NCBI GenBank assembly: GCA_977016875.1
Contig: CDRNST010000056.1
Span: 2,728,001 to 2,792,000, forward strand
Length of the DNA: 64,000 bases
Source of the DNA: Pavona decussata
Lineage: Eukaryota
Reading direction: 5' to 3'
The translations under genes and the position numbers were made by a program. Each line of letters begins with the position of its first letter. Position 1 is the stretch's first letter. Positions 8,339 to 50,786 of this stretch are shown piece after piece. Under the pieces are notes generated by a model that saw only the letters and a list, made by a program, of their open reading frames with translations, ran no database searches and had not been told where the DNA came from.

Positions 8339-8955
8339 CTTCTTTTTCTGCTTCTTGATCGAGTGAATCGTCAGAAAACCAACCAGTCCACCGCAAATGA
8401 TGAACAATGCCATAAACCCCGCCACAAAATATTTTCCCTGTTTGTAAATCTCAGCTCTGTATTCAATACCATGAGCGTCGCCGAGATCGATGCTGAACAG
8501 TGGAATTGAGCATAATACCACCATCAAGGTACAGGTTAACCAGATGAGGCAAGAACTAACTACAGCTTTCCTTTTAGTCTTCCAGGCCAAGTATCTCATG
8601 TCGAAAGCAATGGCAAAGTACATGCTTGCCATCAAAGCTAGCATCGACGCAAGATTGAGAACAATGAAGAGGCGATTGAAAAAGCTGGCCACGATGGCCA
8701 GCGTCTTTCCTCTGAACCAAGTCGTCTCCCATACCGTGGAGATCAAGTAAACAGGCATGTTGATGACTGCGTTGAGTATGTCAACGGCAGAAAGATTGGC
8801 GATGAGGACGTTCGGAAGTCACCATGTGTTCGTAGAGATTTAAATCGGGCGATGACGGCCAGAACCGAACCATTACCAAACACTGCACAAAGGCCTTGAA
8901 CAACGGCTAGCACACTCATGACGAGTTTGCTGGAAAATGGCTTCGATGGATACAT
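8339..8955 (-). pseudogene. Rhodopsin-family (class A) GPCR, exon 1 (TM1-TM5), frameshifted near 8825
   Basis: The ORF from 8955 gives TM1 (AVFGNGSVLAVIARFKSLRT). After an apparent 8-bp insertion another frame continues LPNVLIANLSAVDILNAVINMP (TM2) into ORF 8303..8758 (TM3-TM5). The GT donor is at 8338-8337 after KKQKKK, phase 0. Confidence 0.8.
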
Positions 8956-12733: not shown

Positions 12734-14155
12734 ATGCCGTCGTTTTGTTTAATTGTTGGTTGTGGGAACAAAAGCGACAAGTGTCCGAATGTAGCGTTTT
12801 GCCGTGTTCCGAAAGTTTTAACAAACCAAGGAGAACAAACGGAAAGATTGTCATCAGAAAGACGTACTCTTTGGTTAGCGGCAATCAGCAGAGATGACTT
12901 GACAGAAAAGATTTTAGAAAACGACAGAGTTTGTGGGAAACATGTTATCAGTGGCAGACCAGCCCAACTTTGGGATAGATTCAATCCCGATTGGATCCCA
13001 ACTGTGCACCTTGGTCACGAGAAAAAATCAATCGACGAAACAGCAAAATCACAAGCTAATCTGGAGCGTAGTGCCAGAATCAAGGAGCGCAGAAAACGTA
13101 AAGCCGAAAGAGAAGAAAAGGAAAAAGTGAAAGTTGTGAAACTGGAGGAGGCTAGCGAGCCAGTTGAAGCGTTAATTGATGACATCGAAGATGTTACAGC
13201 TGATATGAGAGAGTTAAAATTAAAACACGTTGCCACAAATACAGACGAATCTGCCTGTCTAGCTGGTCGGCAGGGGGCGCCAGGACAAGTTTATGATGAA
13301 GAGTATTTTTGTAATGATGATGACAAGGTCAAATTTTACACTGGATTGCCTTCATACGAGATTTTGATAAAAACATTTTCCTTTATGGCTCCTCACGCAA
13401 CTAGGCAATTCTCCCGTGCTCGCTTAAGCAAGTTTCAAGAATTTATTATGGTCCTTATGAAATTACGGCTAAACGTACCTCACCAGGATCTCGCCTATCG
13501 GTTTGGTGTATCTCGATTTGTTGTTTCAAGAGTCTTCAATTCATGGATCGAGGTAATGGATATTCGCTTGTCTCCTTTGATAGTGTGGCCTGAGCGCAAA
13601 GACCTTCAGAAAACCATGCCGAAATGTTTCATAGATGCATTTGGTCTAAAAACAACTGTGATTATCGACTGTTTTGAGATTTTCATTGACAGGCCTACCA
13701 ATTTGCTGGCAAGGGCACAAACATTTTCTAATTATAAGCACCACAACACCGTTAAGGCGCTCATTGGCATTACCCCCCAAGGATCAATTTCATTTGTCAG
13801 TAAAGCATGGGGTGGTAGGGCATCAGATAAGTTTGTAACTGAAAACTCTGGTTTCCTTACAAACTTGTTGCCTGGAGACCAGGCAAGCTTAAATATCCCT
13901 GCTTTTACCAAAGGGAAAAGTCAGTTAGATCCAATCGATGTGGAGAAGACAAGAAAAATTGCAAACGTACGAATACACGTGGAAAGGGTGATTGGAGTTT
14001 TGAGACAAAAATACACTATTTTGCAAAGTACATTACCTACAGATTACCTCACATGCAGGAAAAAAGAAGAGAAGGAAACCCCTTTGATTGATAGAATCAT
14101 CAGGGTATGTTCTGCATTAGTGAATCTGTGCCCTCCAATCATACCATTTGACTAA
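12734..14155 (+). CDS. THAP-HTH-DDE_Tnp_4 transposase with an in-frame deletion of the ADRGF catalytic segment
   Basis: Motifs present: THAP (C..VGCGN...W...RVCGKHV..G...PDWIPT), KFYTGLP, HTH (LMKLRLNVPHQDLAYRFGVS), IIDCFEIFIDRP, FSNYKHHNTVK, WGGRASDK and RIHVERVIG. Confidence 0.92.
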   Translation: MPSFCLIVGCGNKSDKCPNVAFCRVPKVLTNQGEQTERLSSERRTLWLAAISRDDLTEKILENDRVCGKHVISGRPAQLWDRFNPDWIPTVHLGHEKKSIDETAKSQANLERSARIKERRKRKAEREEKEKVKVVKLEEASEPVEALIDDIEDVTADMRELKLKHVATNTDESACLAGRQGAPGQVYDEEYFCNDDDKVKFYTGLPSYEILIKTFSFMAPHATRQFSRARLSKFQEFIMVLMKLRLNVPHQDLAYRFGVSRFVVSRVFNSWIEVMDIRLSPLIVWPERKDLQKTMPKCFIDAFGLKTTVIIDCFEIFIDRPTNLLARAQTFSNYKHHNTVKALIGITPQGSISFVSKAWGGRASDKFVTENSGFLTNLLPGDQASLNIPAFTKGKSQLDPIDVEKTRKIANVRIHVERVIGVLRQKYTILQSTLPTDYLTCRKKEEKETPLIDRIIRVCSALVNLCPPIIPFD

Positions 14156-14333: not shown

Positions 14334-15795
14334 TTAAACATCTTCTAATTTCAACAAACTTAGATTCATGTTGAAAATTTTAAAACTCTCAAGATCACTG
14401 TAAACATTGCCACGTTTGACATAAGAGTCAAACTCTTTCGCATCAATGCAGTAGGGACACTTAACCTCACCCAACCCAAGGCCACAACAGTCATAGGAAC
14501 AAATGAAATCGGGAGTGGCATGCAAAAATGGGTAATCTTTGTTTATGAATGTACCACACTTGACTGCTTTAAAGTTGTTATGTTTTGCCTTCATCTGCTT
14601 TTCATATTCAGCGATTGCCACTGTTGCCAACTCTTCATGTTTGCAGCCATGCCTTGTAGCTGCAGAAGGGAAGTTAAACACGTCGGGATAACAAATTGTT
14701 TTGATAAGAGATTGTGATGGCTGTGCAGGATCAGTGTGACATGCTGCATGCCATTGAGATGCACCAATTCGTCCAGCCCTGTGATGATAGAAAGCACTGC
14801 TTTTTGCTTGGTTTATGGTTTCTTTCTCAATCATTTCTATTCGCTCATTTGTGAGGCTTATTTCAACTTTGTAGCACTGTTCTAGTAGCTCAGTATAATT
14901 AAGGTTTATGTATTTCTCATCAAATAAATCTCGGATAGATGGTATCCCTCTCGTTTTGAAATAAATTCATCTGCATATGTTTCTACTAAACTTAGACAAA
15001 CAGGTTTGACTTTGCATTCATTGAGAGAACTGTACAACTGTTCAAGTTCATCCTTAGTTGGTTGCTGCACTGACCCCTGTACTGTAGGTGATTCTTTTAT
15101 CCCTGTAGAGGATTGATCACTGTTATCATTCTTGCCGCACAAACTAAGATCGTTTAAAGACTTCTCCAGGCTGCCTTCAGTTTTCTTGCTGAGGAAAAGT
15201 TGATGTCATTAACTCTGGCGTAATCAGCCTTTTCAACATAACTTGGCAAAATCCAGCCACACTTAACCTGCGTACACGCTAACCTTCCGTTTTGTCTGGT
15301 GACAACTTCAAGATAGAATAGTACACTTGCTATATGTGAGCAACACTCACCCAGGCCAGCCATACACCCTGCACAATGTGCTGACATCACAGTACCTTAT
15401 TCGTTTGTTATAATCCACAATTGCACTAGTGGTTCATTCAGTCTCTGCGAATGTCTTACTTTGGCCAACACCACAAACCTCTTGTTAATCATACATCCAA
15501 GGACACTGGAAATGAAGCCACTAACCATCTGGTTGTAAGCTTGAAGGCTTCTGTAAGCTTTAAATTGTGCGTTGGAATAAATCTAGTATCGAGCACAAGA
15601 TACGAAAGTAAGTTTTAAATCCATGGATTCAACTGGTGGAAGGCATTTCTCGCTCAACGTTTTAGCTGGGATGAGAAGCGGATCTATACCAATCTCAGAA
15701 ATTTTAACGAGATACCTATATTTTACCTTGCCTTCAAGATTTTCGCTATAATTTGAGAGCATCAGAGGCTCAACCCCTGTTGTTTCAGTCGCCAT
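14334..15795 (-). pseudogene. SWIM zinc finger + YqaJ-like (lambda-exonuclease family) accessory gene of ISL2EU, fragmented
   Basis: Fragments lie in several frames: SAHCAGCMAGLGECCSHIASVLF (SWIM), R.GRIGAS, HGCKHE, FLHATPD...GEVKCPY (YqaJ). There are multiple frameshifts and the C-terminus is truncated. Confidence 0.85.
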
Positions 15796-16320: not shown

Positions 16321-16787
16321 AACGATGTGGCAGATTTGAATCGGTCATGGTACCGGGCACTTGGCAATACTATGGGAACAAAGACCGTATTGACATCACT
16401 GTGAACAAAGATTTAATTTTACAGGGACTTTGTTTATGTGGGAGTGAGAACAATGACTACAGTGTTACTTTGGAGATAAAGAATGACAGTAATAATCTGT
16501 GTCTTGCGTCAAATTCAGGAACATTTTCTTCAAAGTTACTGCAATGCAAAAGTAAAAAATATCATGGATTTGAGGTTTTGTTTGATTCTCCAGTTAACTT
16601 GAAAAAGAACGTCAAGTACCAGATAGAAGCGTTAATATCTGGTCCAACATCCGGAAACGGAGAAAGGGGCTCTAACACTGTTCAGTGCGATGGTGTGACA
16701 TTTACATTTTCATCCAGCGCTTTAGGGTCTACGAACGGAACGTCTTCTACGTTAGGCCAATTTCCTGAATTTATTTTCTCGGTGTAG
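16321..16787 (+). pseudogene. BTB-PHR family 5'-truncated fragment (PHR domain only, subtype B)
   Basis: Reads RCGRFESVMVPGTWQYYGNKD...GQFPEFIFSV*. The 3' flank matches that of the copy at 57611. No BTB/BACK sequence lies upstream. Confidence 0.85.
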
Positions 16788-19471: not shown

Positions 19472-20774
19472 ATGTCTGTACAAGAAAACTGCCAAACAAA
19501 GAGACCCACCATCAGAGAAAGAACCGGGTTTATGCTCAACAACGATCTCTTCAGCGATCGTAAAGTTTGTGGTTTGTAAGATCAAAAAAAAGCGATGATG
19601 AAAGTGAAAGTAAACAAGCGATTCCAGCTCACAAGTTTGTGCTGTCGATTGGCAGTCCTGCATGTTCGAAGCCATGTTTCACGGTGAAGTAGCGGAGACT
19701 AGAGACTCTATTGAACTGCCTGACTGTGAGTACGAGAGTCTGTTAGAATTATTTCGTTTCATATACAGCGATGAAGTGAACTTGAGCGGAAGTAATGTGA
19801 TGGGAGTGTTATACTTGGCTAAGAAGTACATGATGCCTTCACTCGCTGATAAATGCACGGAATATTTGCAAAACAATTTAGATCCGTCAAATGTTTTCAG
19901 CATTCTATCAACGGCTGAATAGTTTGAGGAGAAAGAACTGGTAGATCGATGCTGGGAGGTTGTTGACAGAGAGACAAAAGCAGCAGTGAAATCGGATGGA
20001 TTTGCGACAATTGAGAGATCCTTACTTGAAGCAGTAGTCTCAAGAGATACTCTGACCATTGAAGAGATCGATTTGTTTAAAGCTGTTGATCAGTGGGCAA
20101 CAAAGGAGTGCGAAAAACAAGGTTTAGCAGTAAGCGGTGAACTGAAAAGAAGGATTCTTGGAGAAACGATTATTAAAGCGATCTGTTTTCCACTGATGAA
20201 AGCCAACAAAGAATTTGAAACTGTCGTCCTTGATGCAAGAATTCTTTCTCTACATGAAATAGCCCTGTTTCCAAGTTTTTCAATTCGGTATTGGCTGCTC
20301 CAGTGGGATTCCCAAAGATCAGACGGTTTGCATTGCCTGCTACCGATGTGGTAGATTTGAATCGGTAAATGAGAAGGATTGGTGCTACAGTGAGCGAAAA
20401 GACTTCCTTAATTTTTCGGGTTGACAAAGACCGGCATGTTACATGGACTGTGTTTTTTTTGGCAGTGAGAACAATGACTATGAGGTGATGTTAGAAATAA
20501 AGTATTCCTGTGATAATTCAACTGTGGTGTCCGAGGAAGCAACATTTTATTCAAAGCTGATGCTATATAAAGGCAGTTCTTACTATGGATTTGAAATTCT
20601 CTTTGACTTTGCAGTTTACTTAAAGAAAACCACTGAATACCGAATTGAAGCTTCTGGTCCAAACTCTTGGTTTGGAAATGGTGGCCTTTGTGTGGTTCAG
20701 ATATCTGGTGTGACATTTACTACGGAACCAATTATTCAAATGGTCAGTTTCCTAAATTTCTGTTTTCAGTGTAA
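19472..20774 (+). pseudogene. BTB-BACK-PHR (BTBD3/6-like) pseudogene, PHR subtype A
   Basis: ATG at 19472 is homologous to the other copies. There are several frameshifts and a premature TAG at 19920-19922. It ends at the homologous TAA. Confidence 0.9.
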
Positions 20775-22363
20775 CTTTCTATGTGGACGATTTATTAATG
20801 AAAGCTGTAGGAAAGAAAAAAAAATACTGAAACTGTTGTTATCTGAAGCCGAGAAGAGCACTTAGAACAATCCAGATGGCCTGCTTATATGAAGTCTTTG
20901 TTTAAGCTAAGAGATAACGTAAAAAATCTCAGAGGAGTAAATAAATTAGTTTTGCCTAAGGTTAAAACCACATGACATGGATTGAAATCCGGCCAAAGTA
21001 AGGGTATACTGCTTCCATAGCTAGACAAGCTTACTGTCTATGACTAATATCAAATTATTTAGAAAAGAAGTGCAGAAAATTTTATCTTTCGGATAACTCT
21101 TTCACTTAATTACATATGTACATATTATTTGTTTATTTTCGGCACATTAGCATGTAGTTTGCTTGAGGCCTAAACAGCCTCAATCAAATTCGAGGGTAAA
21201 GTTTCATTTATTCATTCATTCATTGGTTATTTACTTTAATAACTAGGCTCCAGTGTTTTCTGTAGGGAAGCACATCAGTTTTAGGTAACGTTGTAAAAAA
21301 TAAATTAAGTAAAAAAATTGTCTTCTTACAACCTTTACATGTAATATTTTGTATGAACACAGAGAATAAAATATGCCACCAAATTCTGTGAATCTGTTTA
21401 CTGCTTATACTTTTTCCTAAATTCCTAATTAATCTAAAAGGGCGAATACCATATAACAAGGTTTCTTAATAATATCTTTAACGGCCTATATGTTAGTTTT
21501 TTGTTTGCATGAGAATATTCGAATTTTTCAAGAACTGAATAGGCCATCCCTGAGGTCATGAGACTCTGAGTGAGCAACGTGACCTGCACTCTGTCATCAT
21601 AAAGGATCTATGCAAGAAATTGTTTCTGTATTAGAAAAGAGAAAGCTGAACTCATTCGCTCATGTTCCAGATTATCAGTGTAAGCGTCGATTTAAACTCA
21701 AATCTAAAACGTGAACGGGAAAAACCCTCGCAAAACTTTGAGCTTTCCTGATACACTCAGTGAAAACCGTGGGAAATATTCGTTGTAAATCTAGCGGAAC
21801 CCTACTCAACCATGAATCCATTGAGGACACTAAATAACTGACTTCCAAGGATATCGCGGCTCAGCTTGGCCGACTCTCTGCGCGTTCCGAATTCCGAGCG
21901 AATGATCCTAATTTATGCCTATTTATGGCTCTAGTTTCGTTTCCCTCGGAAATTGACCACCGCCGCGCGCGGGAAACACGAACCGACGACCACACGAGAG
22001 GTAACAACACAGTAACAGTCTTAAAAATATTCGGTTTTATTAATTCCATCTTCGCATTCACCATTCGCATTCCGGTTGTGTCCATAACTAGCACAGCTAA
22101 AGGTATAATAAATTTTCCGGGTTTAAAGGTGGCAATAGCTTTGGTAAAAACTGTACAACATATTTGATCAAGTACTTTGGCACGAACATAAAATTGATTT
22201 TAGCAGCGAAACTGACGAGGGTGAGGGGGGTTGTGGGTCACGGCTACAGTCATTTGTTCGCTGCGTAGCGGAGCGAAAGATACCAGGCTGATTTGGCAGT
22301 ATCACATTTAAAAAGTCAGCAAGCAATTACTGCTTGTGTGCATGCGTCCTCCCGCTGCGCTAT

Positions 22364-22578: not shown

Positions 22579-23919
22579 ATGTCTTTTCAAGAAAACTGGC
22601 AAACAAAGAGACCCACCATCAGAGAAAGAACCAAATTTATGATCAACAACGCTCTCTTCAGCGATGTGAAGTTTGTGGTTCGTAAGAAAGATGGTGAAAG
22701 TGAAAGGAAGCAAGTGATTCCCGCTCACAAGTTTGTGCTGTCGATTGGCAGTCCTGTGTTTGAAGCCATGTTTTACGGTGAGCTAGCGGAGACTAGAGAC
22801 TCTATTGAACTTCCTGACTGTGAGTACGAGAGTCTGTTGGAGTTGTTTCGTTACATGTACAGCGATGAAGTTAATTTGAGCGGAAGTAATGTGATGGCGG
22901 TGTTATACTTGGCTAAGAAGTACATGGTCCCCTCACTCGCTGATAAATGCACGGAATATTTGCAAAAAGAATTAGATCCGTCAAATGTTTTCAACATTCT
23001 GCCAACGGCTGAAAAGTATGAGGAGAAAGAGCTGGTGGATCGATGCTGGGAGGTTGTTGACAAAGAAACAAAAGCGGCAGTGAAATCGGATGGATTTGCG
23101 ACAATTGAGAGATCCTTACTCGAAGCAGTAGTCCCAAGAGATACTCTGACCATTGAAGAGATCGATTTGTTTGAAGCTGTTGATCAGTGGGCAGCAAAGC
23201 AGTGCGAAAAACAAGGTTTAGCAGAAAATGGTGAACAGAAAAGAAGGATTCTTGGCGAAAAGATTATCAAAGCTATTCGCTTTCCATTGATGAAACAGGA
23301 CGAATTTGCCTCCGCTGTCCTTGATGCAAGCATTCTTACTCCAAATGAAGTGGTGACCTTTTTTAAATTCTTCAGTTCACCATTAACTTCTCCAGTGGGA
23401 TTTCCAGATACCAGGCGTTCAGGAACAAGAGCCAAGACTACAGTCCTTTACCGATGTGGCAGATTTAAATCGAAGTCATGCCTTGTCTGGGATTATACTC
23501 GTGGGTATAAGGACTTCCTTGGTGTTACTGTGAACAAAGATATAACGTTGCATGGACTTTGTTTATTTGGCAGCAAGAATAATAGCTACACTGCTTCTTT
23601 AGAGATAAAAGATGCCAGAAACAATTCTTGCCTTGTCTCAAAGTCAGGAACATTTTCTTCAAACCTTCTGCAATTTAAACTTTCTAACAATCATGGATTT
23701 GAGGTTTTGTTTGATTCTCCACTTAACTTGAAAAAGAACATAAAGTACCAGATAGAAGCGTTAATATCTGGTCCGTCATCTGAGATAGGAGAAAATGGCT
23801 CCAATACTGTTCAGTGCGGTGGTGTGACATTTACATTTTCAGTCTGCACTCTAGGAAGGATTACTAACGGAACATCTCCCACAGGAGGACAATTTCCTGA
23901 ATTTCTGTTCTCGGTGTAG
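22579..23919 (+). CDS. BTB-BACK-PHR domain protein (BTBD1/2/3/6-like), 446 aa, intact, intronless
   Basis: Motifs: FSDVKFVV, IPAHKFVLSIGSPVFEAMFYG, ELFRYMYSDEV, VLYLAKKYMVPSL (BTB); RDTLTIEEIDLF..W, IRFPLM (BACK); RCGRF..W.Y..D...NGT...GQFPEFLF (PHR). The true ATG is inferred from paralogs. Confidence 0.95.
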   Translation: MSFQENWQTKRPTIRERTKFMINNALFSDVKFVVRKKDGESERKQVIPAHKFVLSIGSPVFEAMFYGELAETRDSIELPDCEYESLLELFRYMYSDEVNLSGSNVMAVLYLAKKYMVPSLADKCTEYLQKELDPSNVFNILPTAEKYEEKELVDRCWEVVDKETKAAVKSDGFATIERSLLEAVVPRDTLTIEEIDLFEAVDQWAAKQCEKQGLAENGEQKRRILGEKIIKAIRFPLMKQDEFASAVLDASILTPNEVVTFFKFFSSPLTSPVGFPDTRRSGTRAKTTVLYRCGRFKSKSCLVWDYTRGYKDFLGVTVNKDITLHGLCLFGSKNNSYTASLEIKDARNNSCLVSKSGTFSSNLLQFKLSNNHGFEVLFDSPLNLKKNIKYQIEALISGPSSEIGENGSNTVQCGGVTFTFSVCTLGRITNGTSPTGGQFPEFLFSV

Positions 23920-37233: not shown

Positions 37234-38578
37234 ATGTCTGTCCAAGAAAACTGGCAAACAAGGAGAAACACCATCAGAGAAAGAACCAAGTTTATGCTCA
37301 ACAATCATCTATTCAGCGATGTAAAGTTTGTGGTTCGTAAGAGCGATGGCGAAAGTGAAAGTAAGAAAGTGATTCCAGCTCACAAGTTTGTACTGTCGAT
37401 TGGAAGTCCTGTATTTGAAGCCATGTTTTACGGTGAGCTAGCGGAGACTAGAGACTCCATTGAACTGCCTGACTGTGAGTACGAGAGTCTGTTGGAATTG
37501 TTTCGTTACATGTACAGCGATGAAGTGAATTTGCGCGGAAGTAATGTGATGCGAGTGTTTATATACTTGCATGGCGAAGAAATATATCGTGCCTTCACTC
37601 GCTGAGAAATGCAGCGAATATTTGCAAAATAATTTAGATCCTTCAAATGTTTTCAGCATTCTACCAACGGCTAAAAAGTTTGAGGAGAAAGAACTGGCGG
37701 ATCGATGCTGGAATGTTGTTGACAAGGAGACAGAAGCGGCAGTGAAATCGGATGGATTTGCGATAATTGACAGATCCTTACTTGAAGCAGTAGTCTCAAG
37801 AGATACTCTGACAATTGAAGAGATCGATTTGTTTAAAGGTGTTGAGTAGTGGGCAACAAAACAATGTCAAAAGCAAGGCTTATCAGCAGATGGTGGATCG
37901 AAAAGAAAGATTTTGGGTGAGCGGATTATTAAATCAATACGCTTTCCAGTAATGAAACAAGAAGAATTCGCAGCTGTTGTCATTGACTCCAAAATTCTGA
38001 CCCCAGATGAAATATCCACCTTTTTCAAGTTTTTCAGTTCGGCTTTAACTTCTCCAGTGGGATTTCCAGAAACCAGGCGTTCAGGAACAAGAGCCAAGAC
38101 TGCATGTGGCAGATTTAAATCGGTGTCAGTCGGCGATTCCTGGGGCTATGATAGTGGGCGTAAGGACTTTCTTGGTGTTACTGTGGACAGAGAGATAACG
38201 TTGCATGGACTTTGTTTTTGTGGCAGCGAGAATAAAAGCTACACTGTTTCTTTAGAGATAAAAGATGCCAGAAACAGTTCCTGCCTTGTCTCAAAGTCAG
38301 GAACATTTTCTTCAAACCTTCTGCAATATGAACTTACTAATTATCATGGATTTGAGGTTTTGTTTGACCGTCCCGTTATTTTGAAAAAGAACACTAAGTA
38401 CCAGATAGAAGCGTTAATATCTGGTCCTGCATCTTGGAGGGGTACAGGTGGCTTTAGTACCGTGCGATGTACTGGTGTGACATTTACATTTTCAACCAGT
38501 GATTCAAGGCCTTCTAACGGAACAAGTTGTACAATGGGACAATTTCCAGATTTTCTTTTTTCCCTTAAGTTAAGTTAG
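37234..38578 (+). pseudogene. BTB-BACK-PHR pseudogene, PHR subtype C
   Basis: Frameshift at about 37560-37572 and a TAG at 37847-37849; otherwise full length. Confidence 0.9.
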
Positions 38579-39120
38579 GTTTTGTCATTACATCGAATGC
38601 CAAAAATGCGTTACCATAAATATCAAGATACAAACATATTACTAAATACCAGAAACCTGCAAAAGGTGATAGATAATCAGCTTGTCAGTAAAGAAAAGTA
38701 ACAGTTGAAAAACGGTAAAATTAAGGCTATTATTTCAAGTATGAAATTGGAGGTTTATGAACAATCTAGAAGGTCTGTTGGATATAGGTGCTCTGATTAG
38801 TAATTAAGACAAATGCTGTTTAGTTGTTTTGTTATTTTCCAAACGAATAAACGGGAATGAATAATTAATGATAATATAAGGTCACGATTGGTGAATTAAA
38901 GTGGATATGCTTTAAAGATTGACCGTCGTCCACTTCAACAGCATCATGATTCCCCTGGGACTGATTGGGGAGTTGGCTGTAAAATATAACTTAAAATAAA
39001 AATTGAATCTACACAATAGTTTTACACGTCATTTCTGAAAAACAGAGAATTCTTTTTTTTACCATTTCAATTTGTATAGGTACTTCTTTTGCGTCTTAAT
39101 GCCTTTCAATTTAATATCTA

Positions 39121-39428
39121 GGGTGCTTAACATTTAGACAAAAAATCCGGAAATTTGGGTTTGAAGTCATGCCGGTAAGGTAAAATGGAAATTGTGGAGT
39201 ACCTTCAGAGGTATTCCTCTTTTTCCATTCGGAAGGAACAGCGGAAAATTCCTTATCATTTGAATGAATCCTCCATTTCCAGGCCTTTTCCAGCTAGAGT
39301 GGGACAAAACACCTGATTGATAAATCAAGCGCAATCTCACCCGGTTTGTCGGACGAATTCGGAAAATCCCTTACCATTCTCCAACGGTTTATACACTAAC
39401 CGAATTTTCCTACAAATGGTAAGCACCC
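39121..39428. mobile_element. Harbinger-like MITE, 3-bp TSD CTA; paralogous copies at 52791-53097 and about 63858-64000 (partial)
   Basis: Ends are CTA|GGGTGCTTAACATTT...AAATGGTAAGCACCC|CTA. It occupies the same position in all three subtype C 3' flanks. Confidence 0.7.
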
Positions 39429-39968
39429 CTACAAGAGTAGATTTATGTTTTGTTTCCTGAGTGAAGATACTGTGTATAAATGAAGTTACTCAGTAAGGTT
39501 ATCTCATCTTATCAAGTCAGTGGACATTGAGTTTTGTAAATTATAAGCCATGACATCGCTATACAGCCGAACCTCTTGTTGCGACAATTCCCCTCTTTTC
39601 CAAAGTGACCTCTTTTCCAAAGATACCAACATTTTCCCAGTCAATTGACGCTATAGTAGCGACAGTTATGACCTCTTCCCATTTCACTTCGGGGGATGGG
39701 TACGGCTACACGTAGGCTACAGTGTTGTATCTGCTGCATGTGTCTCGAAAGTTTCTATTATATTTTGTTAACTTCCCGCTTCAACTTATTTGCATGAGTA
39801 ATGCATTAATATAATGCACTTGTACACGTAAACCTCAACCTTGAGGGTAAAATACAAACTGCAGACCGAGGATAAAATGGAGACGTTGGCGAACAAAGGA
39901 TCGGGGCAAGCAGTGAGGGCTTGAACCGAGACACCGATGTGACATGATAGCGTGCTCGAGTACCGGTA

Positions 39969-41470
39969 CAGGCCCGCAAATGATCCCCGGACCGGAAATG
40001 ATCCCCAAATTGAGCCGAAAATGATCCCCGGACTAAAAATGATCCCCAGATTGAACCGCAAATGATCCCCGATAGCCTCACCATATATATAGAATGGAAT
40101 GGACTCAAATTTGAACAGTGGATTTCAACTTGATACACTTCATTCTTTTTCTTAATAACACCAGTCGTTATATTAAAGTACCTGCATGCAATTTCACAAC
40201 TTTAAAAATTATAATGTAGCAGGTCAGTGCAACAGAACAATTTACTTATAAAGTGGAACATACATGCCTGTGTACATAATTTACTTATACCATTATAACG
40301 CCTAAAATGTGCACGAATTGTACGAAATTCGTCATTTTTCAAATAGGGCAAACAATACGAAACAAATTTTGACAGTGCAACTCAAAAATACGTAACTGGA
40401 ACAGACCAACTTACTCGAATGGGAAAGTCTCCTCAGAGAGTATCACAACATCGCACTGATATAGTGAGCTTCCCCGAAGTAACCCAGCCACTTCCATCCC
40501 GAACGCATTCACTTTAGAGAATTCGTGAATCGTAGTGGGTGGGAGACGTACCTTCGACGGATGTCCATTACCCCTGAGTGAGGTGATGTTGCCTTATTAG
40601 GTCTATTAGGTCTGGTGAACATTCTCGATATTCCGGTTGCTGCGGCGCAGTCTAGCTTAGGAGAAGGTTTATCTATAATCTACCCAAGTAACCATAGTCA
40701 AGAAGAAGCTGATTTCGACAGCATTGCTTTGGTGGGCCATGAAGCCCAACAAAGCAACTTCCATAGCCTTCAGCAAATGGACGCAAATACAACAGATGAA
40801 CTCGAAGAATTAAAATTGAAGTATGGAGAAGGGCGAATTACTGAAGATCAAATTTGCCTAAAATGCGGGAAAAATTGACAGCTATTCCCAAGGCGTCTAT
40901 GAGGGGACCGTTGTCTTCTGCAGGTCTATGCCGTCCAATCAGCGACAAAACGAAAACGAAAGACAAAATCAACATATTACACGATAACGTATTGGACGAC
41001 CGAGGATAAAACGTTATGCTTAAGACTAAGATCCGATTAAGAACAAAGGCGACGAAAGTTGGCGAGATTTGACCGCCATCTGAAGTGCATTGACCGATTC
41101 TCCTTCCTTTTACAAAAAAAAAAAAAATCTTGCGAACGTCTTAGCTTACCCGGTCTTTAAGAGTTTCGTACAATTCATGCACATTTTAGGCATTGTAATG
41201 GTATAAGTAAATCATATACATGCATGTTACAGTTTATAGATAAACTGTTCTCAGGTTCTGCTATTATACAATTTTTTAAGTTGTCAAATTTGCATGCAGA
41301 TAGTTTAAATATAACGACATGGTGTTATAAACAAAAATGAAGTGTATAAAGTTGAAATCCACTGTCCAAATTTGTGTCCATTCCATTCTATATTTATGTT
41401 GAGGTGATCAGGGATCATTTGCGGTTCAATTTGGGGATCATTGCAGGTCCTGGGATCATTTACGGGCCTT
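39969..41470. mobile_element. Foldback-type non-autonomous DNA transposon with about 300-360-bp inverted arms, TA flanks
   Basis: Left end TA|CAGGCCCGCAAATGATCCCC with repeated AAATGATCCCC units, mirrored at 41411-41470. The arms extend inward to about 40330 and 41161. Confidence 0.75.
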
Positions 41471-41684
41471 TAAAGCACCAATGTCATACTGCTTGACTGA
41501 TCTGACAGCTGATTACTAGGAGTGCCCTCACTGGCAACTTCATAAATTTTTAGAAGATTTTAAAGACTGGTTCAACTTGTCGAAGTATTGCATTGAATCT
41601 GTCCTGTCATGTCCTGTCTTGTCCTGTACTGTATTAAACTCAACTCAACTCAGGCAACTCATACAATTCAATTGCATACAGGCA

Positions 41685-42007
41685 TAGACTGTTCACAGCC
41701 CCCCTATTTTTCCGTGGGATCCTCGAGACCGGTAGGCTTCGATGGAACCGCCGCCATCTTTGTTTATATAAGCGAACGCGATCTGGGGAGAGTGTCTAAA
41801 CTACCGAGGGGAGCGGGAGTGGGTGTTATTATAGTGGGAGAGATCGCGCTCGCTTATACCGAAGCGTACCGGTCTGGAGAATCCCACGGAAAAATAGGGG
41901 GGCTGTGAACAGTAGTTTAGACACTCTCCCCGGATCGCGCTCGCTTATACCGAAGCGTACCGGTCTCGAGAATCCCACGGAAAAATAGGGGGGCTGTGAA
42001 CAGTCTA
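41685..42007. mobile_element. MITE with TAG...CTA ends and 9-bp TSD (AcademH-like), with an internal duplication of the right arm
   Basis: TSD ATACAGGCA at 41676-41684 and 42008-42016; TIR TAGACTGTTCACAGCCCCCCTATTTTTCCGTGGGAT; empty site in the paralog at about 27800. Confidence 0.85.
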
Positions 42008-42649
42008 ATACAGGCACCAAGACAAGCACTTATATTGTAGTTGATAGTACATCGAGTGCGTGGCACAAATCGTCAAAATGGCGTTTAAACCAACCAGGAC
42101 ACACCAAGGGACAATGAAGTAAAAAAGTAAGAAGGCTTTATTTCGTATTATTTTCAGTGTCTTTCCGGCGACTCAATCCAGCGAGAGTCTCAATAATATG
42201 GCTTATGCGAACTTCTGCAATTTCAATCAGTTAATTATCAGTGCACATTTCACGTATAAACGGCTCCGAAATCTGGCTCTTAAACACGCAAGAAAACTGA
42301 GGAAACCACAAAGTAATACAATAAGTACATTGTATTTTTTCAATTACTCTAGACTTACCACTTCCATTTACAACTTCAAATCAGCTGTAAATAACCTTGT
42401 TTCACACTACGATTGGGCAACCTGTCGTGTGACCACTTGAATGTAAAATATACTTTAGTTTAGCGCTATTATCCTGCAGCGCTATTTCTCAGAAAACCAC
42501 GTAATAAAATCCGTTCTGATCTGGTGAAAGTGAAAACATTTGATATTTACGTCACGTAAACTGAGCATATGAGTATGCGCAAACGGGCGCTGTTCCATAC
42601 TGCTTGATCAACAACTGTTTGATAGGAGTGCCTACAGCGACCAACGAAC

Positions 42650-43597
42650 ATGTCTGTAAAAGAAAACTGGCAAACAAAGAGACCCACCATCAGAGAAAGA
42701 ACCAAGTTTATGCTCAACAACCATCTCTTCAGCGATGTGAAGTTTGTGGTTCGTAAGAACGATGGTGAAAGCGAAAGTATGCAAGTGATTCCAGCTCACA
42801 AGTTTGTGTTGTCGATTGGCAGTCCTGTGTTTGAAGCCATGTTTTACGGTGAGCTAGCGGAGACTAGAGACTCTATTGAACTGCCTGACTGTAAGTCCGA
42901 GAATCTGTTGGAGTTGTTTCGTTACATGTACAGTGATGAAGCGAATTTGAGCGGAAGTAATGTGTTGGGAGTGTTATACTTGGCTAAGTAGTACATGGTG
43001 CCGTCACTCGCTGATAAATGCACGGAATATTTGCAAAAACATTTAGATCCGTCGAATGTTTTCAGCATTCTGCCACCGGCTGAAAAGTATGAGGAGAAAG
43101 AGCTGGTGGGTCGATGCTGTGAAATTGGATGGATATGCGACAATTGAGAGATCCTTACTTGAAGCAGTAGTCTCAAGAGATACTCTGACCATCCAAGAGA
43201 TCGATTTGTTTAAAGCTGTTAATCAGTGGGCAACAAAGGAATACGAAAAGCAAGGTTTAGCAGCAAATGGTGAACTGAAAAGAAGGATTCTTGGCGAAGA
43301 GATTATTAAGGCGATCCGCTTTCCATTGATGAAACTGGACGAATTTGCCTCCGCTGTCCTTGATGCAAGTATTCTTACTCCAAATGAAGTGGTGACCTTT
43401 TTTAAATTCTTTAGTTCATCATTGACTTCTCCAGTGGGATTTCCAGATACCAGACGGTCAGGAACAAGAGCCAAGACTGCAGTCCTTTACCGATGTGGCA
43501 GATTTGTATCGAAGTCAGGCGATCCTTGGAACTATATTAGTGGGAATAAGGACTTTCTTGGTGTTACTGTGGACAGAGATATAACGTTGCATGGACT
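42650..43597 (+). pseudogene. BTB-BACK-PHR pseudogene, 3'-truncated
   Basis: TAG at 42989-42991 and a deletion near 43118. Homology stops at ITLHGL, where Penelope-associated sequence begins. Confidence 0.9.
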
Positions 43598-45325
43598 CAG
43601 TCTCACACGCTTTTCTGTCACTTTATCTTACTCGGCCCAATGATGTGCGAGCAGTACTGACCCATTTAGCAGTTAACGTCGGTTCACAGCCGTTGCTGAG
43701 GAAGAACAGCACAGACAGCACCAACTTGAAAGTGTCCGTGTCTCCCATCGGTTTTTTCCAGGACTAGACAGTGGGAGTGCCGATGGGGAGCAAACTTTGG
43801 ACCCAATTATTTATTTTGTGTCATTGGCCACATTGAGAATTAAATCTTTAATCAGTATGAAGGAAGCGTACTGGAGTTAGTAAACGCTTCATCGGCGACA
43901 TCGTGAGAGCCACCTGCAGTACCATGGAAGAGATCGAAGACTCTGCTAATTTTGTCAATGGTTTTGGTCCCAGTCTTGAATTCACTTGGGCATATCTGAT
44001 GTACAACAATCTTTTTTTAATCTTTACATGAAACCATCTTCTGATCGCCTCTTCACCTGCATCCACTATAAAGAAATTGACACACATACGTAGCTAAATA
44101 ATTCATCCTCTCACCCTGTGAAGACTGTGAAGTGTAAGAACTCTATTTCTTATAAACAGTTTCTCTGTTTGAGACGCAACTGCAGTGACGAGTAAGACGG
44201 CTTAAAAAAAAAACAAAACAAAAATAAAAACGAGGAGGCGTCTACTTTTGTATTTCTCAGGATCCGTGGCTACCTGGCAACACAAGTAATAAAATTGAAC
44301 ACGCCCGGAACAAGGTACTGATGTTAAGTATCAGCTACCCCTCGTGAAATCATCTTTTAGAAAGTACGATCAAAACTGAAAACCAACCAGCAATCCCTTG
44401 GTGCTGACATACCATACTTCCAACATATACTTGTTAAGCCATCACGACCAATAACTTCCATCTGACACGGCAGCTATTTTCTAACCTGACGTATTTTATG
44501 CGCATATCGTCGCGATGGAAACCAACGTGACTCTCTGGTCAGGCGCAATATCAACACCACAGCTGCGCCTGTCGGATGATGATCGCGGTACGTTCCCATG
44601 TGGCTATTCACGGTGCAATACTTGCGTTTACACCAACGCATTGCCCACTATTAATGAGTTGCATGTGACGTCAAGGCGGCCAAGTTGGTGGACAGGAACA
44701 ATGAGATTTTTCGCCTCTGGGAGTTACCTTTCATTTTTATGCAAACTTTGTGAAAAAATTTTCTTTTGTTTTGTCCACCAACATGGCAGTGTTGTAAACC
44801 ACCTATAGACACTCCCGGCGGACGCGCCCATTTTCATCCATTCTAGATATACCTGTACCAGCAACAACGCACTGTACCTTATTAAGGGATACGCTTATAT
44901 TAAACGCTGATACTATTGTTTACATTGGAGAGACGGGAAGACGCCTTGAGGACAGATTCAGAGAGCATCTACACTCTACAAGACCGTCCTAACACAGAAC
45001 TGCCTGTGAGCCGATTCTTTACATCACCCGGTCACAGAATTGACGAAATGCTGTGTCCGTTGTCTGTTCCGGTTTTTGAAATAAAACTAGACCTATGCCG
45101 TTTCGAAGCTTTCCTGATACTCCGACATCAGATCCTCCAGCCAGGAGGGCTCAATGCTTACTCTGGAGCACAGTGAGCGCCGCGCGTTGATATAACGTAT
45201 GTTTTGAAACGTTTTCACTCATTTTATTCAAAATCTCTCACGCGCGCGCTTTTAATTTTCACCAGTTGCATTTTTTCACCACTGAAGACTCGAAGCAGTA
45301 GCGGGGATCAGAAACGTTTAGTAAA
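43598..45325 (+). mobile_element. Degenerate Penelope-like retroelement (RT C-terminus + GIY-YIG remnants); more deleted paralog at about 53718-54830
   Basis: Cross-frame remnants include NFVNGFGPSLEFTW, CKNSISYKQFLCLRRNCSD, IPLVLTYH, GTFPCGYSRCNTC, YTCTSNN.LYLI, GETGRRLEDRFREHL and PVSRFFTSPGH. Confidence 0.75.
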
Positions 45326-46290
45326 TATCTTTTTCAGCGCAGGTATCTACAGTCAAAACAATTTTAACATATTCAACCCGCCTTTTTCTCGAACAATTGC
45401 GCTACACAGTACAATTGTAATCTACTTTTAGGCTTCCCAATTTGCTTACATGCATTTCAGTTATTTTTTTAACGCTCATTCATATAAACTGAGTATCAGG
45501 TTTTCTGCGGTTCCTTCTCTTTTCAATAGATCAGGACACTTCACAAGAGACATAAACCCATACTTCTGTAATTATGGCCCACTAAAAACACCTTGCGTCG
45601 GAAAAGCATGCCGGACTAGTCGAAGTGCTGCATTAAACCTGTCCTGCCGGCTATATATACCTTGTTTTCCCCGTGGTCCCCTGCATTCAAAATAAGGCGG
45701 TGCATCTTGTACAATTTAATTGCATACAACACCAAAAGTTCTTATTTCATAGTCGATATTTCCTCGGATGGACCCAAATCTACAAAATGACGTTTAAAAC
45801 GACCAGGACACACGAAGGGACAATAAATTAAAAGTAACAAGGCCTTATTTCGTATTATTTTCAGTTTTACTTTTGGGATACTGATATGGCTTATGACTGA
45901 GCCTCTATTAATTCCACACAATTTTCTGCACATGAAGATAAGTACGTTTTTTGTCAGTTACTCTAGATATATACCACTACGATCTACAGCTTCAAACCAG
46001 CTGTAAACTGATTAGCTTGTTTCACGTTCTACGATTGGGCCGCGGCCTATGGTGTCCTGCCGCTGCGCTATTTCTCAGAACCACGCAATAAAATCCGTTC
46101 CGGTCTGGTGAAAGTGAAAGAATTTGATATTTCTGTCACGCAAGCTGAGCATGGTGATGTGAGTATGCGTAAACGGGCGCTATTCATGTTCGATACTGCT
46201 TGACTGCCGATCAACAACTGTTTGATAGGAGTGCCTACCGAGACCAACGAGAAGAGATTTCGAAATTTTGGACGCCTTCCAATAGCCAAC

Positions 46291-47605
46291 ATGTCTGTCC
46301 AAGAAAACTGGCAAACAAAGAGGCCCACCATCAGAGAAAGAACCAAGTTTATGGTCAACAACCATCTATTCAGCGATGTGAAGTCAGAGCGATGGTGAAA
46401 GTGAAAGTAAGCAAGAGATTCCCGCTCACAAGTTTGTGTTGTCGATTGGCAGTCCTGTGTTTGAAGCCATGTTTTACGGTGAGCTAGCAGAGACTAGAGA
46501 CTCTATTGAACTGCCTGACTGTGAGTACGAGAATCTGTTGGAATTGTTCCGTTACATGTACAGCGATGAACTGAATTTGAGCGGAAGCAATGTGCTGGGA
46601 GTGTTATACTTAGCGAAGAAATACATGGTGCCTTCACTCGCTGATAAATGCACGGAATACTTGCAAAATAATTTAGATCCGTCAAATGTTTTCAGCATTC
46701 TACTAACGGCTGAAAAGATTGAGGAGAAAGAACTGGCGGATCGATGCTGGAAGGTTGTTGACAAGGAGACAAAAGCGGCAGTGAAGTCGGATGGATTTGC
46801 GACAATTGAGAGATCCTTACTCCAAGCAGTAGTCTCAAGAGATACACTGACCATCGAAGAGATCGATTTGTTTAAAGCTGTTGATCAGTGGGCAACAAAG
46901 GAGTGCGAAAAACAAGGTTTAGCAGTAAATGGTGAACAGAAAAGAACGATTCTTGGAGAAGAGATTATTAAAGCGATCCGTTTTCCAAGGATGAAAGAAA
47001 AAGAATTTGCCGCTGACGTCCTTGACACAAAAATTCTTACTCCAGATGAAATAATCGCCTTCGTTAAATTTTATAATTCAACGTTAACCTTTCCAGTGGG
47101 ATTTTCAGAGTCCAGGCGTTCTGGTCCCCTTGATTATCGTTACCGATGTGGTAGGTTCGAGTCTGCAGGTGCGAATCGTTGGGGGTACGGTGGTAAAAAA
47201 GACTTTCTAAACTTTTCTGTGGACAAAGGCATCATGTTACACGGACTGTGTTTGTTTGGCAGCGAGAACAATGACTACAAGGTGATATTAGAAATAAAGG
47301 ATTGCAGTAATAATTCTACTGTAGTTTCCAAAGTAGGAACGTTTTCTTCAAAACGTATGCAATATAAGCACAGTCATTATTTCGGATTTGAAATTCTGTT
47401 TGACTCTGCCATTGATTTAAAGAAAACCACTGACTATCAAATCGAATCCTTAATATCCGGTCCAAGCTCTTGGGGAGGGAGTGATGGCCTATGTGCGGTC
47501 CAGATCTCTGGTGTGACGTTTAGTTTTTCTACCAGTGTAGGGAAACGAGGTAACGGAACAAATTATTCAAATGGTCAGTTTCCTGAATTTCTGTTTTCAG
47601 TGTAA
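46291..47605 (+). pseudogene. BTB-BACK-PHR gene with a single early frameshifting deletion (about 46385), PHR subtype A
   Basis: AAGTCAGAGCGAT replaces AAGTTTGTGGTTCGTAAGAGCGAT. The remaining 389-codon frame is intact. Confidence 0.85.
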
Positions 47606-49463
47606 GTTTCTATTACGGCGGACGATTAATTAAAGAAAGCCGCAGGAAAGAGAAAAATACTGAAACCGTTTTCGTTTCCTTCCCTTCTTGAATAACGAAG
47701 GACGAAGCACACTTAGAACGATCCAGAATATTTACTTTGGTAACTAGGCTCCACTGTTTTTTATAAGTAAACACATTTTAGGTTAGGTTACTCTGTAAAA
47801 AGGACGAGTTCTTTTTTGAATATACAGCAAAATAATGTCTGCCATTTAAGATGTAAGAATCATCGCCTGGAACTTCAGTTTTGTTGAAGATCAAGAGAAT
47901 TTTTCATTGAAATTTGACTGGGGTTTTGCCATGCTGAATTAATGATTTAATATTCTTGCTTATACTAAAAATATCTTAAAAACTTTATGACGGAAAAAAA
48001 GCGTTCTCAAAAAAGAGCAAATCGTAGTTACTAGTTTCCGAGGTAGTATAAACCACTGTTATCACTGTTTTATTATAGCTATATTTAAAAAAAAATAGTT
48101 GTATAAAAAGTGTGAAGAGATTTTGATAATAAAATATAACTATTGTCTAATTGCACCTTTACATGTACTGAATGAAAACAAAGAAGAAAATATACACCCA
48201 AATTCAATGAATCTGTCTTCTGCTCATCTCGCCTAAAGTCCTAACTAATCTGAAAGGACGGACTGCCTTTGTTAATCATTTCTTTAACGGCCTATTTGTT
48301 TTTTCTTTACATGAGAATATTCGAGTATTCAAGAACCGACGCCATCACTAGGGGCATCAGTGACTCTGAGTATTTATGCAACGTAACCATTCTGCCATCT
48401 GAAGGATACAACTGCAAGAGAGGATGAACTAGCTCATCCTCTCTTAATGAAATACGCAATTCAATTTCAATTTCTTTCTCCTTGAGAAAAACTTTATTCG
48501 CTCATGTGTGTATAGGCATCGATTTAGACTCAAATTTAAAACGTGAAGGGGAATAAATATTCGTTGTAAATTTAGCAAAACCCTGTTCAACGAACCATGG
48601 GAGGACACTAAACAAACTGACTCCCAAGGATATTGCTCAGCTTGGCCGACTCTTTGCACGTTCCGATTTCCAAGCGAATGATCCTAATTATAATTGATGC
48701 CTTTTTCAAGACGGTAGTTTTAATCCCGGCAGTGTTGTTATGTTATGACAGAGCTGAGATATTTCTCTTCGTGTCCATTGGTAACTGACCACTGCCGCAC
48801 GCGGGATCGGAAACGCGTAACGACGAACACGCCATAACAAATAGGAGTGGTGCAAAAAAATTGGGGCTGATAGCGGGTTAGTAAGAGTCTTGAAAAATAA
48901 TTATTTGGTTTTATTTAGTTTCGACTTCGCATTAATACTTCCAGTTGTGTCTACTCAATAACTAGTATAGCTAAAGGTATATTAAATTTTCCGGGTTTAA
49001 AGGGGGCAATAACTGTGGTGAAAACTGTACTTTTGCTTAAACAGAAAATTGATTTTAGTAGCGAAACTGACGAGGGTGGGGAGGGAAGGGAGATGGGTCA
49101 CAGCTTCACTACTTGCAACATTTTGCTGTAGTTACAGTCGATACAAAAACAAGGAAGTCATTTGTTCGCTGTGTAGCGGAGGGAACGATACCAGGCTGAT
49201 TTGGTAGTATCACTGCTTGTGTGCGTGCGTTCTCCCGCTGCGCTATTTCTCAGAAAACCACGCAATAAAATTCGTTCCGGTCTGGTGAGAGTAAAAACAT
49301 TTGATATCTCAGTCACGCAAACTGAGCATGGTGATGTGAGTATGCGTAAACGGGCGCTGTTCCATACTGCTTGACTGCCGATCAACAACTGTTTGTTAGG
49401 AGTGCCTACAGCAACCAAGAAGAAGAGATATCGTGAACTTTTGGACGCCTTCCTACGACCAAC

Positions 49464-50786
49464 ATGTCTGTACAAGAAAACTGGCAAACAAAGAGGCCCA
49501 CCATCAGAGAAAGAACCAAGTTTATGCTCAACAATCATCTATTCAGCGATGTGAAGTTTGTGGTTCGTAAGAGCGATGATGAAAGTGAAAGTAAGCAAGT
49601 GATTCCAGCTCACAAGTTTGTGCTGTCGATTGGCAGTCCTGTGTTTGAAGCCATGTTTTACGGTGAGCTAGCGGAGACTAGAGACTCTATTGAACTGCCT
49701 GACTGTGAGTACGAGAGTCTGTTGGAGTTTTTTCGTTACATGTACAGCGATGAAGCGAGTTTGAGCGGAAGTAATGTGATGGGAGTGTTGTATTTGGCGA
49801 AGAAATACATGGTGCCTTCACTCGCTGATAAATGCACGGAATATTTGCAAAGTAATCTTGCTCCGTCAAATGTTTTCAGCATTCTACCAACGGCTGAAAA
49901 GTATGAGGAGAAAGAGCTGGTGGATCGATGCTGGAAGGTTGTTGACAAGGAGACAAAAGCGGCAGTGAAATCGGATGGATTTGCGACAATTGAGAGATCC
50001 TTACTTGAAGCAGTAGTCTCGAGAGATACTCTGACCATTGAAGAGATCGACTTGTTTAAAGCTGTTGATCAGTGGGCAACAAAGGAGTGCGAAAAACAAG
50101 GTTTAGCAGAAAATGGTGAACAGAAAAGAAAGATTCTTGGAGAAGAGATAATAAAAGCGATCCGTTTTCCAGTGATGAAAGAAAACGAATTTTCAGCTGT
50201 TGTCCTTGATGCAAAAATGCTTTCTCCGGAAGAAGTGATCATCTTTTTTAAGTTTTTCAATTCAACATTGGCTACTCCAGTGGGATTTCCAGATACCAGG
50301 CGGTCAGGAACAGTCCTTTACCGATGTGGCAGATTTGAATCGATGTCAGTCGATCTCTGGCGCTATAATAGTGAGTACAAGGACATTCTTGATTTTACTG
50401 TAGACAAAGATATAACGTTCCATGGTGTTTGTTTGTGTGGCAGCGAGAGTAATAGCTATTCTGTTTCTTTAGAGACAAAAGATGCCAGTAACAATTCCTG
50501 CCTTGTCTCAAAGTCAGGAACATTTTCTTCAAAACTTCTACAATATAAACTTACTAACTATTATGGGTTTGAGGTTTTGTTTAACCGTCCCGTTCACTTG
50601 AAAAAGAACACTAAGTACCAGATAGAAGCTTTAATATCTGGTCCATCATCTGGGAGGGGTACAGGTGGCTTAAGTACCGTGCTATGTACTGGTGTGACAT
50701 TTACATTTTCAACCAGTGATTCAAGTCCTCTTCACGGAACAAGTTGTGCGAGAGGACAATTTCCAGAGTTTCTTTTTTCCCTTTAA
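49464..50786 (+). CDS. BTB-BACK-PHR domain protein, 440 aa, intact, intronless
   Basis: Complete ORF with all motifs. Confidence 0.95.
   Translation: MSVQENWQTKRPTIRERTKFMLNNHLFSDVKFVVRKSDDESESKQVIPAHKFVLSIGSPVFEAMFYGELAETRDSIELPDCEYESLLEFFRYMYSDEASLSGSNVMGVLYLAKKYMVPSLADKCTEYLQSNLAPSNVFSILPTAEKYEEKELVDRCWKVVDKETKAAVKSDGFATIERSLLEAVVSRDTLTIEEIDLFKAVDQWATKECEKQGLAENGEQKRKILGEEIIKAIRFPVMKENEFSAVVLDAKMLSPEEVIIFFKFFNSTLATPVGFPDTRRSGTVLYRCGRFESMSVDLWRYNSEYKDILDFTVDKDITFHGVCLCGSESNSYSVSLETKDASNNSCLVSKSGTFSSKLLQYKLTNYYGFEVLFNRPVHLKKNTKYQIEALISGPSSGRGTGGLSTVLCTGVTFTFSTSDSSPLHGTSCARGQFPEFLFSL

Follow-up and report, generated by a model that had tools for sequence, protein, structure and literature searches.

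We analysed a 64,000-nucleotide stretch of genomic DNA from the stony coral Pavona decussata (GenBank assembly GCA_977016875.1, contig CDRNST010000056.1, here C56, positions 2728001-2792000), which we call the window. It contains 11 BTB-BACK-PHR (BTBD6-like) gene copies, all intronless and on the same strand, which we name by their first window position. Three of the 11 are intact (22579-23919, 49464-50786 and 62009-63346), and eight are broken, truncated or fragmentary (16323, 19472, 28500, 31072, 37234, 42650, 46291 and 57611). In the examined copies, one uninterrupted exon holds the entire coding sequence. Around the window, a head-to-tail array of ~40 copies extends over ~250 kb (about C56:2.63 to 2.88 Mb), with the window in its middle, and further arrays of BTB-BACK-PHR genes lie on contigs C84, C129, C45 and C36. 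Genome-wide, the 602-Mb assembly gave 476 first-look candidates; 95 were scored and gave 97 matches. Model metazoans have four to seven such genes per genome (PMC1257465), whereas the coral has hundreds of candidates, with many copies broken. The family has thus undergone a large lineage-specific expansion in this coral. An initial annotation of the window had claimed that individual genes of the array are recombinant mosaics of three diverged subtypes, A, B and C. We report here that segment trees, topology tests and synonymous sites agree in showing such mosaics.

Pfam searches returned one domain order in the three intact copies: BTB (PF00651, E = 1e-26 to 6e-26), BACK (PF07707, E = 2e-11 to 3e-10, residues 138-246) and PHR (PF08005, E = 1e-27 to 1e-29, full profile covered). 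The closest PDB sequence for the BTB domain was human BTBD6 (2VKP, E = 5e-29), and the closest for the PHR domain were the PHR domains of MYCBP2 and BTBD2. An AlphaFold model was confident in the PHR (predicted local distance difference test 84-95, residues 290-445) and of low confidence in its BTB/BACK part. The top Foldseek matches of the PHR model were the PHR domains of BTBD2 (3NO8, template modelling score 0.83) and MYCBP2 (3GBW and 3HWJ). With an N-terminal BTB, a central BACK and a C-terminal all-beta PHR, the coral copies belong to the BBP (BTBD1/2/3/6-like) proteins; vertebrate BTBD1, BTBD2, BTBD3 and BTBD6 have the same three domains in the same order. The copies are unlike the few-gene BBP set of model metazoans in their single-exon coding sequences and same-strand tandem arrays. 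For the BBP family, PHR is the part of a Cul3 ligase that is expected to recognise the substrate (PMC1257465). By family, then, the coral copies are presumed Cullin-3 substrate adaptors with PHR as the recognition module (PMC1257465), and their PHR loops would bind the targets.

Do all parts of these genes share one history? The initial annotation had proposed separate trees for gene segments and a breakpoint scan as checks on its claim. We aligned the coding sequences of the 11 window copies with those of 16 copies from outside (L numbers) by using MAFFT; 15 of the 16 came from the C56 array, leaving out its remaining ~20 copies, and one was the closely related L014 on contig C401. Copies from the second array, on C84, served as the outgroup. 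Maximum-likelihood trees were built for segments cut at the joints proposed in the initial annotation: the BACK end (coding bases 641-810), the first half of PHR (PHR-N, 811-1120) and the second half (PHR-C, 1121-1335). The trees were strongly incongruent, the opposite of the congruence that the initial annotation had named as a refutation. In the BACK-end tree, a B clade of 37234, L006, L007, L010, 57611, L012 and L018 had support of 100, and 49464 fell inside the A clade (support 87-88). In the PHR-N tree, 49464, 37234 and 22579 shared one C clade of 11 copies (support 99), which did not include 57611, L012 or L018. In the PHR-C tree, 22579 moved from the C clade (support 97) to the B clade (support 86). 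These clades are incompatible; hence, no single tree fits all three segments. A sliding-window nearest-neighbour scan likewise showed partners changing along the genes in the manner first described.

We compared topologies with approximately unbiased (AU) tests. Congruent placement was rejected for 49464 (p = 0.006 for the BACK end and 7e-13 for PHR), for 37234 (p = 1.5e-5 and 6e-7) and for 22579 (p = 0.024 and 0.031). A greedy GARD-like breakpoint scan, blind to the coordinates of the initial annotation, placed breaks at coding bases 841, 601, 151, 1123 and 721, with gains in the corrected Akaike information criterion (AICc) of 867, 324, 130, 112 and 62, respectively; those at 841 and 1123 support the joints. 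The pairwise homoplasy index was significant for the whole gene (z = -18, p <= 5e-4) and inside bases 1-600 and 601-840. It was not significant inside bases 841-1122 (p = 0.08) or 1123-1338 (p = 0.6), yet it was significant when both were combined. We conclude that the two PHR halves act as units that are exchanged whole. Tests of the order of informative sites in triplets gave a permutation p of 5e-5 at each of the three joints, and Max-chi-square gave p = 2e-4. A GENECONV-like longest-run permutation test was of no help, as the 98%-identical pair L003/L005 dominated its global p and regional conservation distorted the pairwise values. Adjacent segments of these genes, in sum, have conflicting, well-supported trees and clustered informative sites with definable joints, as expected of mosaic paralogues.

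Perhaps no exchange has taken place, and rate differences or convergent selection mimic a mosaic on one tree? Constraint is indeed very uneven from one part of the gene to another (mean pairwise identity of 0.9 in BTB and 0.55-0.8 in PHR), the PHR loops evolve fast, and branch lengths, not topology, account for some of the breakpoint scan's gain in AICc. However, even with branch lengths re-optimised for each fixed topology, every partition rejects the topology of each other partition (AU p < 2e-4). Moreover, the conflict is present in synonymous divergence (dS). Copy 49464 differs from L015 by a dS of 0.18 in the BACK end and 1.1-1.7 in PHR, while its dS to L006 is 0.92 in the BACK end and 0.06-0.19 in PHR. 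For 22579 and 62009, dS rises from 0.12 in PHR-N to 0.66 in PHR-C. Changes in dS at the joints are 5-10 fold and opposite in direction for different partners of one gene. Because this contrast is found at synonymous sites, selection or rate differences do not explain the mosaic. The non-coding 3' flanks also sort with the PHR-C type, so that the signal is present at both synonymous and non-coding sites. We consider it highly improbable that these genes have evolved without exchange.

The front of the gene has a different history from the rest. Array-wide, the median dS is 0.20 in BTB and the front of BACK and 0.50-0.55 further 3', and it reaches 2.3 between subtypes. Hence, homogenisation of the front half is much younger than the split of the subtypes. 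It is plainest in the pair 62009 and L013, which are 96-99% identical over bases 1-450 and 57-68% identical after base 720.

The initial annotation had put the switch points at about 50280 in 49464, at 38040-38070 in 37234 and at 23695-23714 in 22579. Each of these fell within ~20 bases of the joint that we obtained from the triplet tests (Table 1), and the motif it had named in 22579 sits at 23695-23714. In both 49464 and 37234, the foreign piece is a patch of ~120-230 bases in the region of the BACK end and linker, flanked 5' and 3' by C-type sequence. The A patch of 49464 is ~120-150 bases long. The B tract of 37234 (~220 bases) has identical edges in L006, L007 and L010, as if a single old event had been passed down to the four paralogues, now 5-10% apart. 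The ends of these two independent patches are within ~25 bases of each other, in the conserved block for the linker PVGF...RRSG. At coding bases 1110-1116, L011 has the same joint as 22579, and L008 has it as well when compared with one of the two reference copies that we used. Other switches inside PHR were found at about 1032-1053 in L010 and at about 972-978 in L003/L005; since the positions differ among copies, the PHR-internal joints are not all at one spot. As had been proposed, the joints of the three window copies lie in conserved blocks, namely, the GFEVLFD strand and the linker. Mean identity at joints was 0.80 against a background of 0.73 (p = 0.009), a comparison that is partly circular in that joints can be placed only where informative sites are lacking.

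Two further claims of the initial annotation stood in part. The first was that there are three subtypes. Their positions and the type of each copy hold in the window, but three types are a simplification: with the 16 further copies included, there are at least eight combinations of BACK-end, PHR-N and PHR-C types, as well as three classes of 5' flank that are distributed independently of the 3' types. The second was that exchange generates new combinations of binding loops. This is so for the 22579-type event, the only one to give a new combination of PHR halves, but not for 49464 and 37234, in which the BACK end and linker were swapped. Sequence 3' of the genes goes with PHR-C in type; in 22579, for example, the 3' flank matches that of the all-B copy L012 at 83% identity over 1178 bases.

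Table 1. Gene copies, exchange joints and assembly gap in the window (types by tblastn, trees and flanks as noted)
Feature	Window position	Strand	Type or composition	Evidence and remarks
PHR-only fragment, residues 292-445	16323..16787	+	B (both PHR halves and 3' flank)	tblastn, trees; flank 93% identical to flank of 57611
Broken copy, several frame changes	19472..20774	+	A throughout	tblastn, trees, flanks
Intact gene, 446 amino acids	22579..23919	+	BACK end and PHR-N C-type; PHR-C and 3' flank B-type	Open reading frame (ORF), Pfam, trees, AU
C-to-B joint of 22579	23685..23716	+	C to B	Triplets; inside conserved core strand encoding GFEVLFD (strand E369-384 of model)
Broken copy	28500..29840	+	A throughout	tblastn; nearest in-window relative of A patch in 49464
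Fragment, PHR C-terminal end only	31072..31242	+	A	tblastn, trees
Assembly gap (N run)	31572..32044	.		Intergenic, 3' flank of fragment 31072; outside every gene copy
Broken copy, frame change near 37570	37234..38578	+	C (tblastn); B-type BACK-end patch, rest C-type including 3' flank	
B-type tract of 37234	37849..38083	+	B	5' edge 37849-37861, 3' edge 38051-38083; triplet joint 38051-38077
Copy truncated after about residue 330	42650..43607	+	C	96-99% identical to L009 over most of shared coding sequence
Copy with frame change near 46384	46291..47605	+	A throughout	tblastn, trees
Intact gene, 440 amino acids	49464..50786	+	C (tblastn); A-type BACK-end patch in C-type gene	ORF, Pfam, trees, triplets
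A-type tract of 49464	50153..50300	+	A	Triplets; 5' edge 50153-50175 (weakly resolved estimate), 3' edge 50274-50300
Interrupted copy	57611..59119	+	B	ORF, tblastn, trees; ~174 inserted bases at 58793-58966 and stop codon
Intact gene, 445 amino acids	62009..63346	+	C (tblastn); all three 3' modules C-type	First 450 bases 96-99% identical to L013 (PHR A-type)

What could have produced these genes? The best explanation, to which we assign a probability of roughly 85%, is that germline homologous recombination between misaligned paralogues of the tandem array made the mosaic copies. Copies would exchange sequence in two ways: by short, non-reciprocal gene-conversion patches and by longer exchanges (unequal crossover or long conversion) that take the 3' flank along. 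One effect would be to keep BTB and the front of BACK alike in all copies. The other would be to deal three old, deeply diverged 3' modules (the BACK end with the linker, PHR-N, and PHR-C together with the 3' flank) into varied combinations. Mosaic copies would then have been multiplied by tandem and block duplication.

The mode of exchange is open to a narrower reading, in which the germline exchange is real but consists mainly of reciprocal unequal crossovers that create and delete copies. In its favour, the tandem copies all point the same way, PHR-C and the 3' flank move together, and the 5'-flank classes are independent of the 3' types. There are also signs of block duplication: the order 37234, 42650, 46291 and 49464 (B/C/C, C/C/C, A and C-type PHR, respectively) is repeated ~50 kb downstream (C56:2814664-2831960) in L007, L009, L017 and the copy at C56:2831103, which suggests that a block of four genes was duplicated. 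The 49464 counterpart at C56:2831103 is only 77% identical to it at the BACK end; hence, the A patch may postdate the duplication. However, the A patch of 49464 and the B patch of 37234, L006, L007 and L010 are C-like on both sides, which takes either conversion or a double crossover. Such two-sided patches are a sign of gene conversion; the linkage of PHR-C with the 3' flank and the apparent block duplication suggest unequal crossover as well. We therefore regard a predominance of crossover as possible but rather doubtful. As the two modes are not exclusive, we count it as a variant within germline recombination among paralogues.

Several points weigh against germline recombination as we have described it. 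There may be closer donors among the ~20 unsampled array copies. The trees have no reliable root, so that parental and derived combinations are not separable. Support for the 22579 event is weaker than for the others (AU p = 0.02-0.03, bootstrap 86), and all types are so similar upstream of the 49464 patch that its 5' edge is only roughly placed. Two more points concern the assembly. Logan short contigs from four public runs end at 50288-50312, within the conserved block, and none was shown to bridge the joint of 49464. Copy 49464 is present, 100% identical over 4323 bases, in an 848-kb ENA contig, which is probably from the same data.

Could the mosaics be assembly chimeras, in which the assembler joined reads of different paralogues inside conserved blocks? 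The joints do lie in conserved blocks, where assemblers and de Bruijn graphs branch, and there are signs of uncollapsed duplicates in this assembly: matches on C35 and C110 have identical scores, like duplicate haplotigs. Contig ends at 50288-50312 are nevertheless to be expected, because the paralogues share words there. More importantly, spliced copies would be near-identical to their sources, whereas the best other match in the genome to the BACK-end piece of 49464 is 95% identical (L015) and the best to its PHR piece is 91% identical (L006). The layout and edges of 37234 recur in L006, L007 and L010, and L011 and L008 share the joint of 22579. The same 4.3 kb around 49464 is found in a second assembly record (63x coverage), although this is probably not independent. 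An exact-protein look-up found no record of copy 22579. Since the halves of 49464 are at most 95% and 91% identical to any other copy, and since joints are common to diverged paralogues, we take the mosaics to be, on strong indirect evidence, old germline exchanges, and we consider assembly chimeras very unlikely.

We also asked whether diversification might be programmed or somatic, with broken copies and PHR-only fragments acting as donor cassettes for intact genes in somatic cells. The support is circumstantial: eight of the 11 window copies are broken or partial yet keep PHR modules, and one broken copy, 28500, ranks with the closest relatives of the 49464 patch. However, the events that we detected are old, with a dS of 0.06-0.2 to the nearest donor, and are fixed in a germline assembly. 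In addition, no variant joints were seen in contigs from the four runs at a 10% threshold, and no recombination signal sequences came to light, although no search aimed at them was made. Of all the explanations weighed here, we consider this the least probable.

Within the gene, the PHR loops change fastest. We defined the PHR loops from the structural model and not from variability. The loops were more variable than the strands (p = 0.007), and the ratio of non-synonymous to synonymous differences was 116:26 in loops and 125:78 in strands (p = 7e-5). The ratio of the corresponding divergences (dN/dS) in loops was 1.1-3.9 in most C and C/B pairs, with one value of 14 that goes back to a tiny dS, but only 0.6-0.8 between A-type copies. 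In PHR strands it was 0.3-0.6, and in BTB-BACK mostly 0.2-0.3. This pattern, which comes from pairwise dN/dS and not from a formal site test, is compatible with diversifying selection on the loops.

Some copies may be expressed. Two public runs that we guessed to be RNA have contigs over copies 46291 and 49464 and none over the spacer at 48161-49145, which is covered by a DNA run. One contig of a run guessed to be RNA (1242 bases, window 46920-48150) comprises the 3' half of the frameshifted copy 46291 and ~550 bases of its 3' flank. These data hint that 49464 and the broken 46291 are transcribed. Upstream of four copies, a GAS-like palindrome, TTCTCAGAA, lies ~215-219 bases from the ATG (window 22364, 28283, 46072 and 49247), and in two more copies it is found at -164 and -507 (window 42486 and 57104). 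It is conserved as part of the repeat unit. Sites of the GAS (STAT) type are not enriched in the window (24 found versus 31 expected).

We made several other observations on the array. Directly after the stop codon of 49464 is an insert of ~1.45 kb (window 50787-52240), after which the C-type 3' flank resumes (52241-52966). The ~174 extra bases in 57611 split its PHR between reference residues ~400 and ~396-445. The 5' flanks of 57611 (window 56811-57344) and L018 are 98% identical over 534 bases, while the coding regions are 69-92% identical; this may reflect a recent exchange or a shared young insertion. At a distance of 153 kb from each other, L003 (C56:2725819) and L005 (C56:2879217) show 98-99% identity across 4.3 kb that comprise the gene and its two flanks; either a segmental duplication of very recent date or a haplotype left uncollapsed could account for this. 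The sequence on both sides of the assembly gap is collinear with the spacer that follows copy 19472, with order and orientation kept (31323-31570 resembles 20948-21200, and 32045-33221 resembles 21252-22353). As the gap is outside the genes, no reading frame is affected, and none of the claimed mosaics touches it. Within this region, window 32909-33221 resembles the distal 5' flank of 22579 and 62009, yet no gene follows; it looks like a repeat unit that has lost its gene. A microsatellite coding for serine, asparagine and lysine is present at 33915-34265.

At the edge of the array is a transposon-rich spacer. It holds an intact ORF of 473 amino acids on the plus strand (window 12734-14155) with THAP, HTH_Tnp_4 and DDE_Tnp_4 domains, a Harbinger-type transposase, and an adjoining ORF on the minus strand (14334-14834) with a YqaJ-like recombinase domain. 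Further upstream, two minus-strand ORFs (4714-5781 and 8303-8758) weakly resemble rhodopsin-type receptors (7tm_1), each in a different part and below threshold. Both may derive from a single gene, or from a broken one, located upstream of the array.

Chimeric genes are known from other tandem clusters. In the receptor clusters of plant NLR resistance genes, KIR and MHC, unequal crossover and gene conversion produce chimeric genes. The coral array resembles these clusters in its conserved scaffolds and shuffled variable recognition parts; it differs from them in that the proteins are unrelated and the clusters encode receptors rather than ligase adaptors. The process itself is known, gene conversion and unequal crossover in tandem arrays being textbook matter; here it is seen very cleanly in a little-studied family. 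The closest analogue in working that we found is the MATH-BTB Cul3 adaptors of Caenorhabditis elegans and grasses, which also combine a constant Cul3-docking BTB with a fast-evolving substrate-binding domain (PMC1257465, PMC4091423). Their recognition domain is MATH and not PHR, and the domain order is reversed; we note a functional resemblance and do not claim membership.

Within the BTBD6-like genes, lineage-specific tandem expansion in an invertebrate has a precedent. Deep-sea vent snails have 56 and 35 BTBD6-like copies, 17 of them on one chromosome, which were read as nervous-system genes (PMC7736800). That report gives copy number and tandem layout and, unlike the present analysis, does not cover mosaic structure, exchange between copies or the evolution of PHR loops (PMC7736800). 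Our literature searches for an expansion of BTBD6/PHR (BTB-BACK-PHR) genes in corals or cnidarians found nothing specific.

To our knowledge, corals have no adaptive immunity, and their recognition of viruses, microbes and symbionts is poorly understood. Might the array be a germline combinatorial system? Selection would then keep three exchangeable 3' modules (the BACK end with the linker, the PHR-N loops and the PHR-C loops) joined at fixed conserved blocks, the broken copies would persist as a stock of donors, and recombination would go on making new Cullin-3 target specificities against viruses, microbes or symbionts. We regard this as an unlikely, speculative extension of germline recombination among the paralogues.

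The exchange has a practical consequence for genome work: before a single tree is built, orthology called or selection tested, the genes have to be divided at about coding bases 600, 840 and 1120, as results from undivided sequences will be misleading. The natural chimeras are concrete material for learning which module sets the target. A family hundreds strong, with a constant ligase-docking end, fast-evolving PHR loops and exchange of modules, shows an evolutionary pattern that would fit a recognition repertoire.

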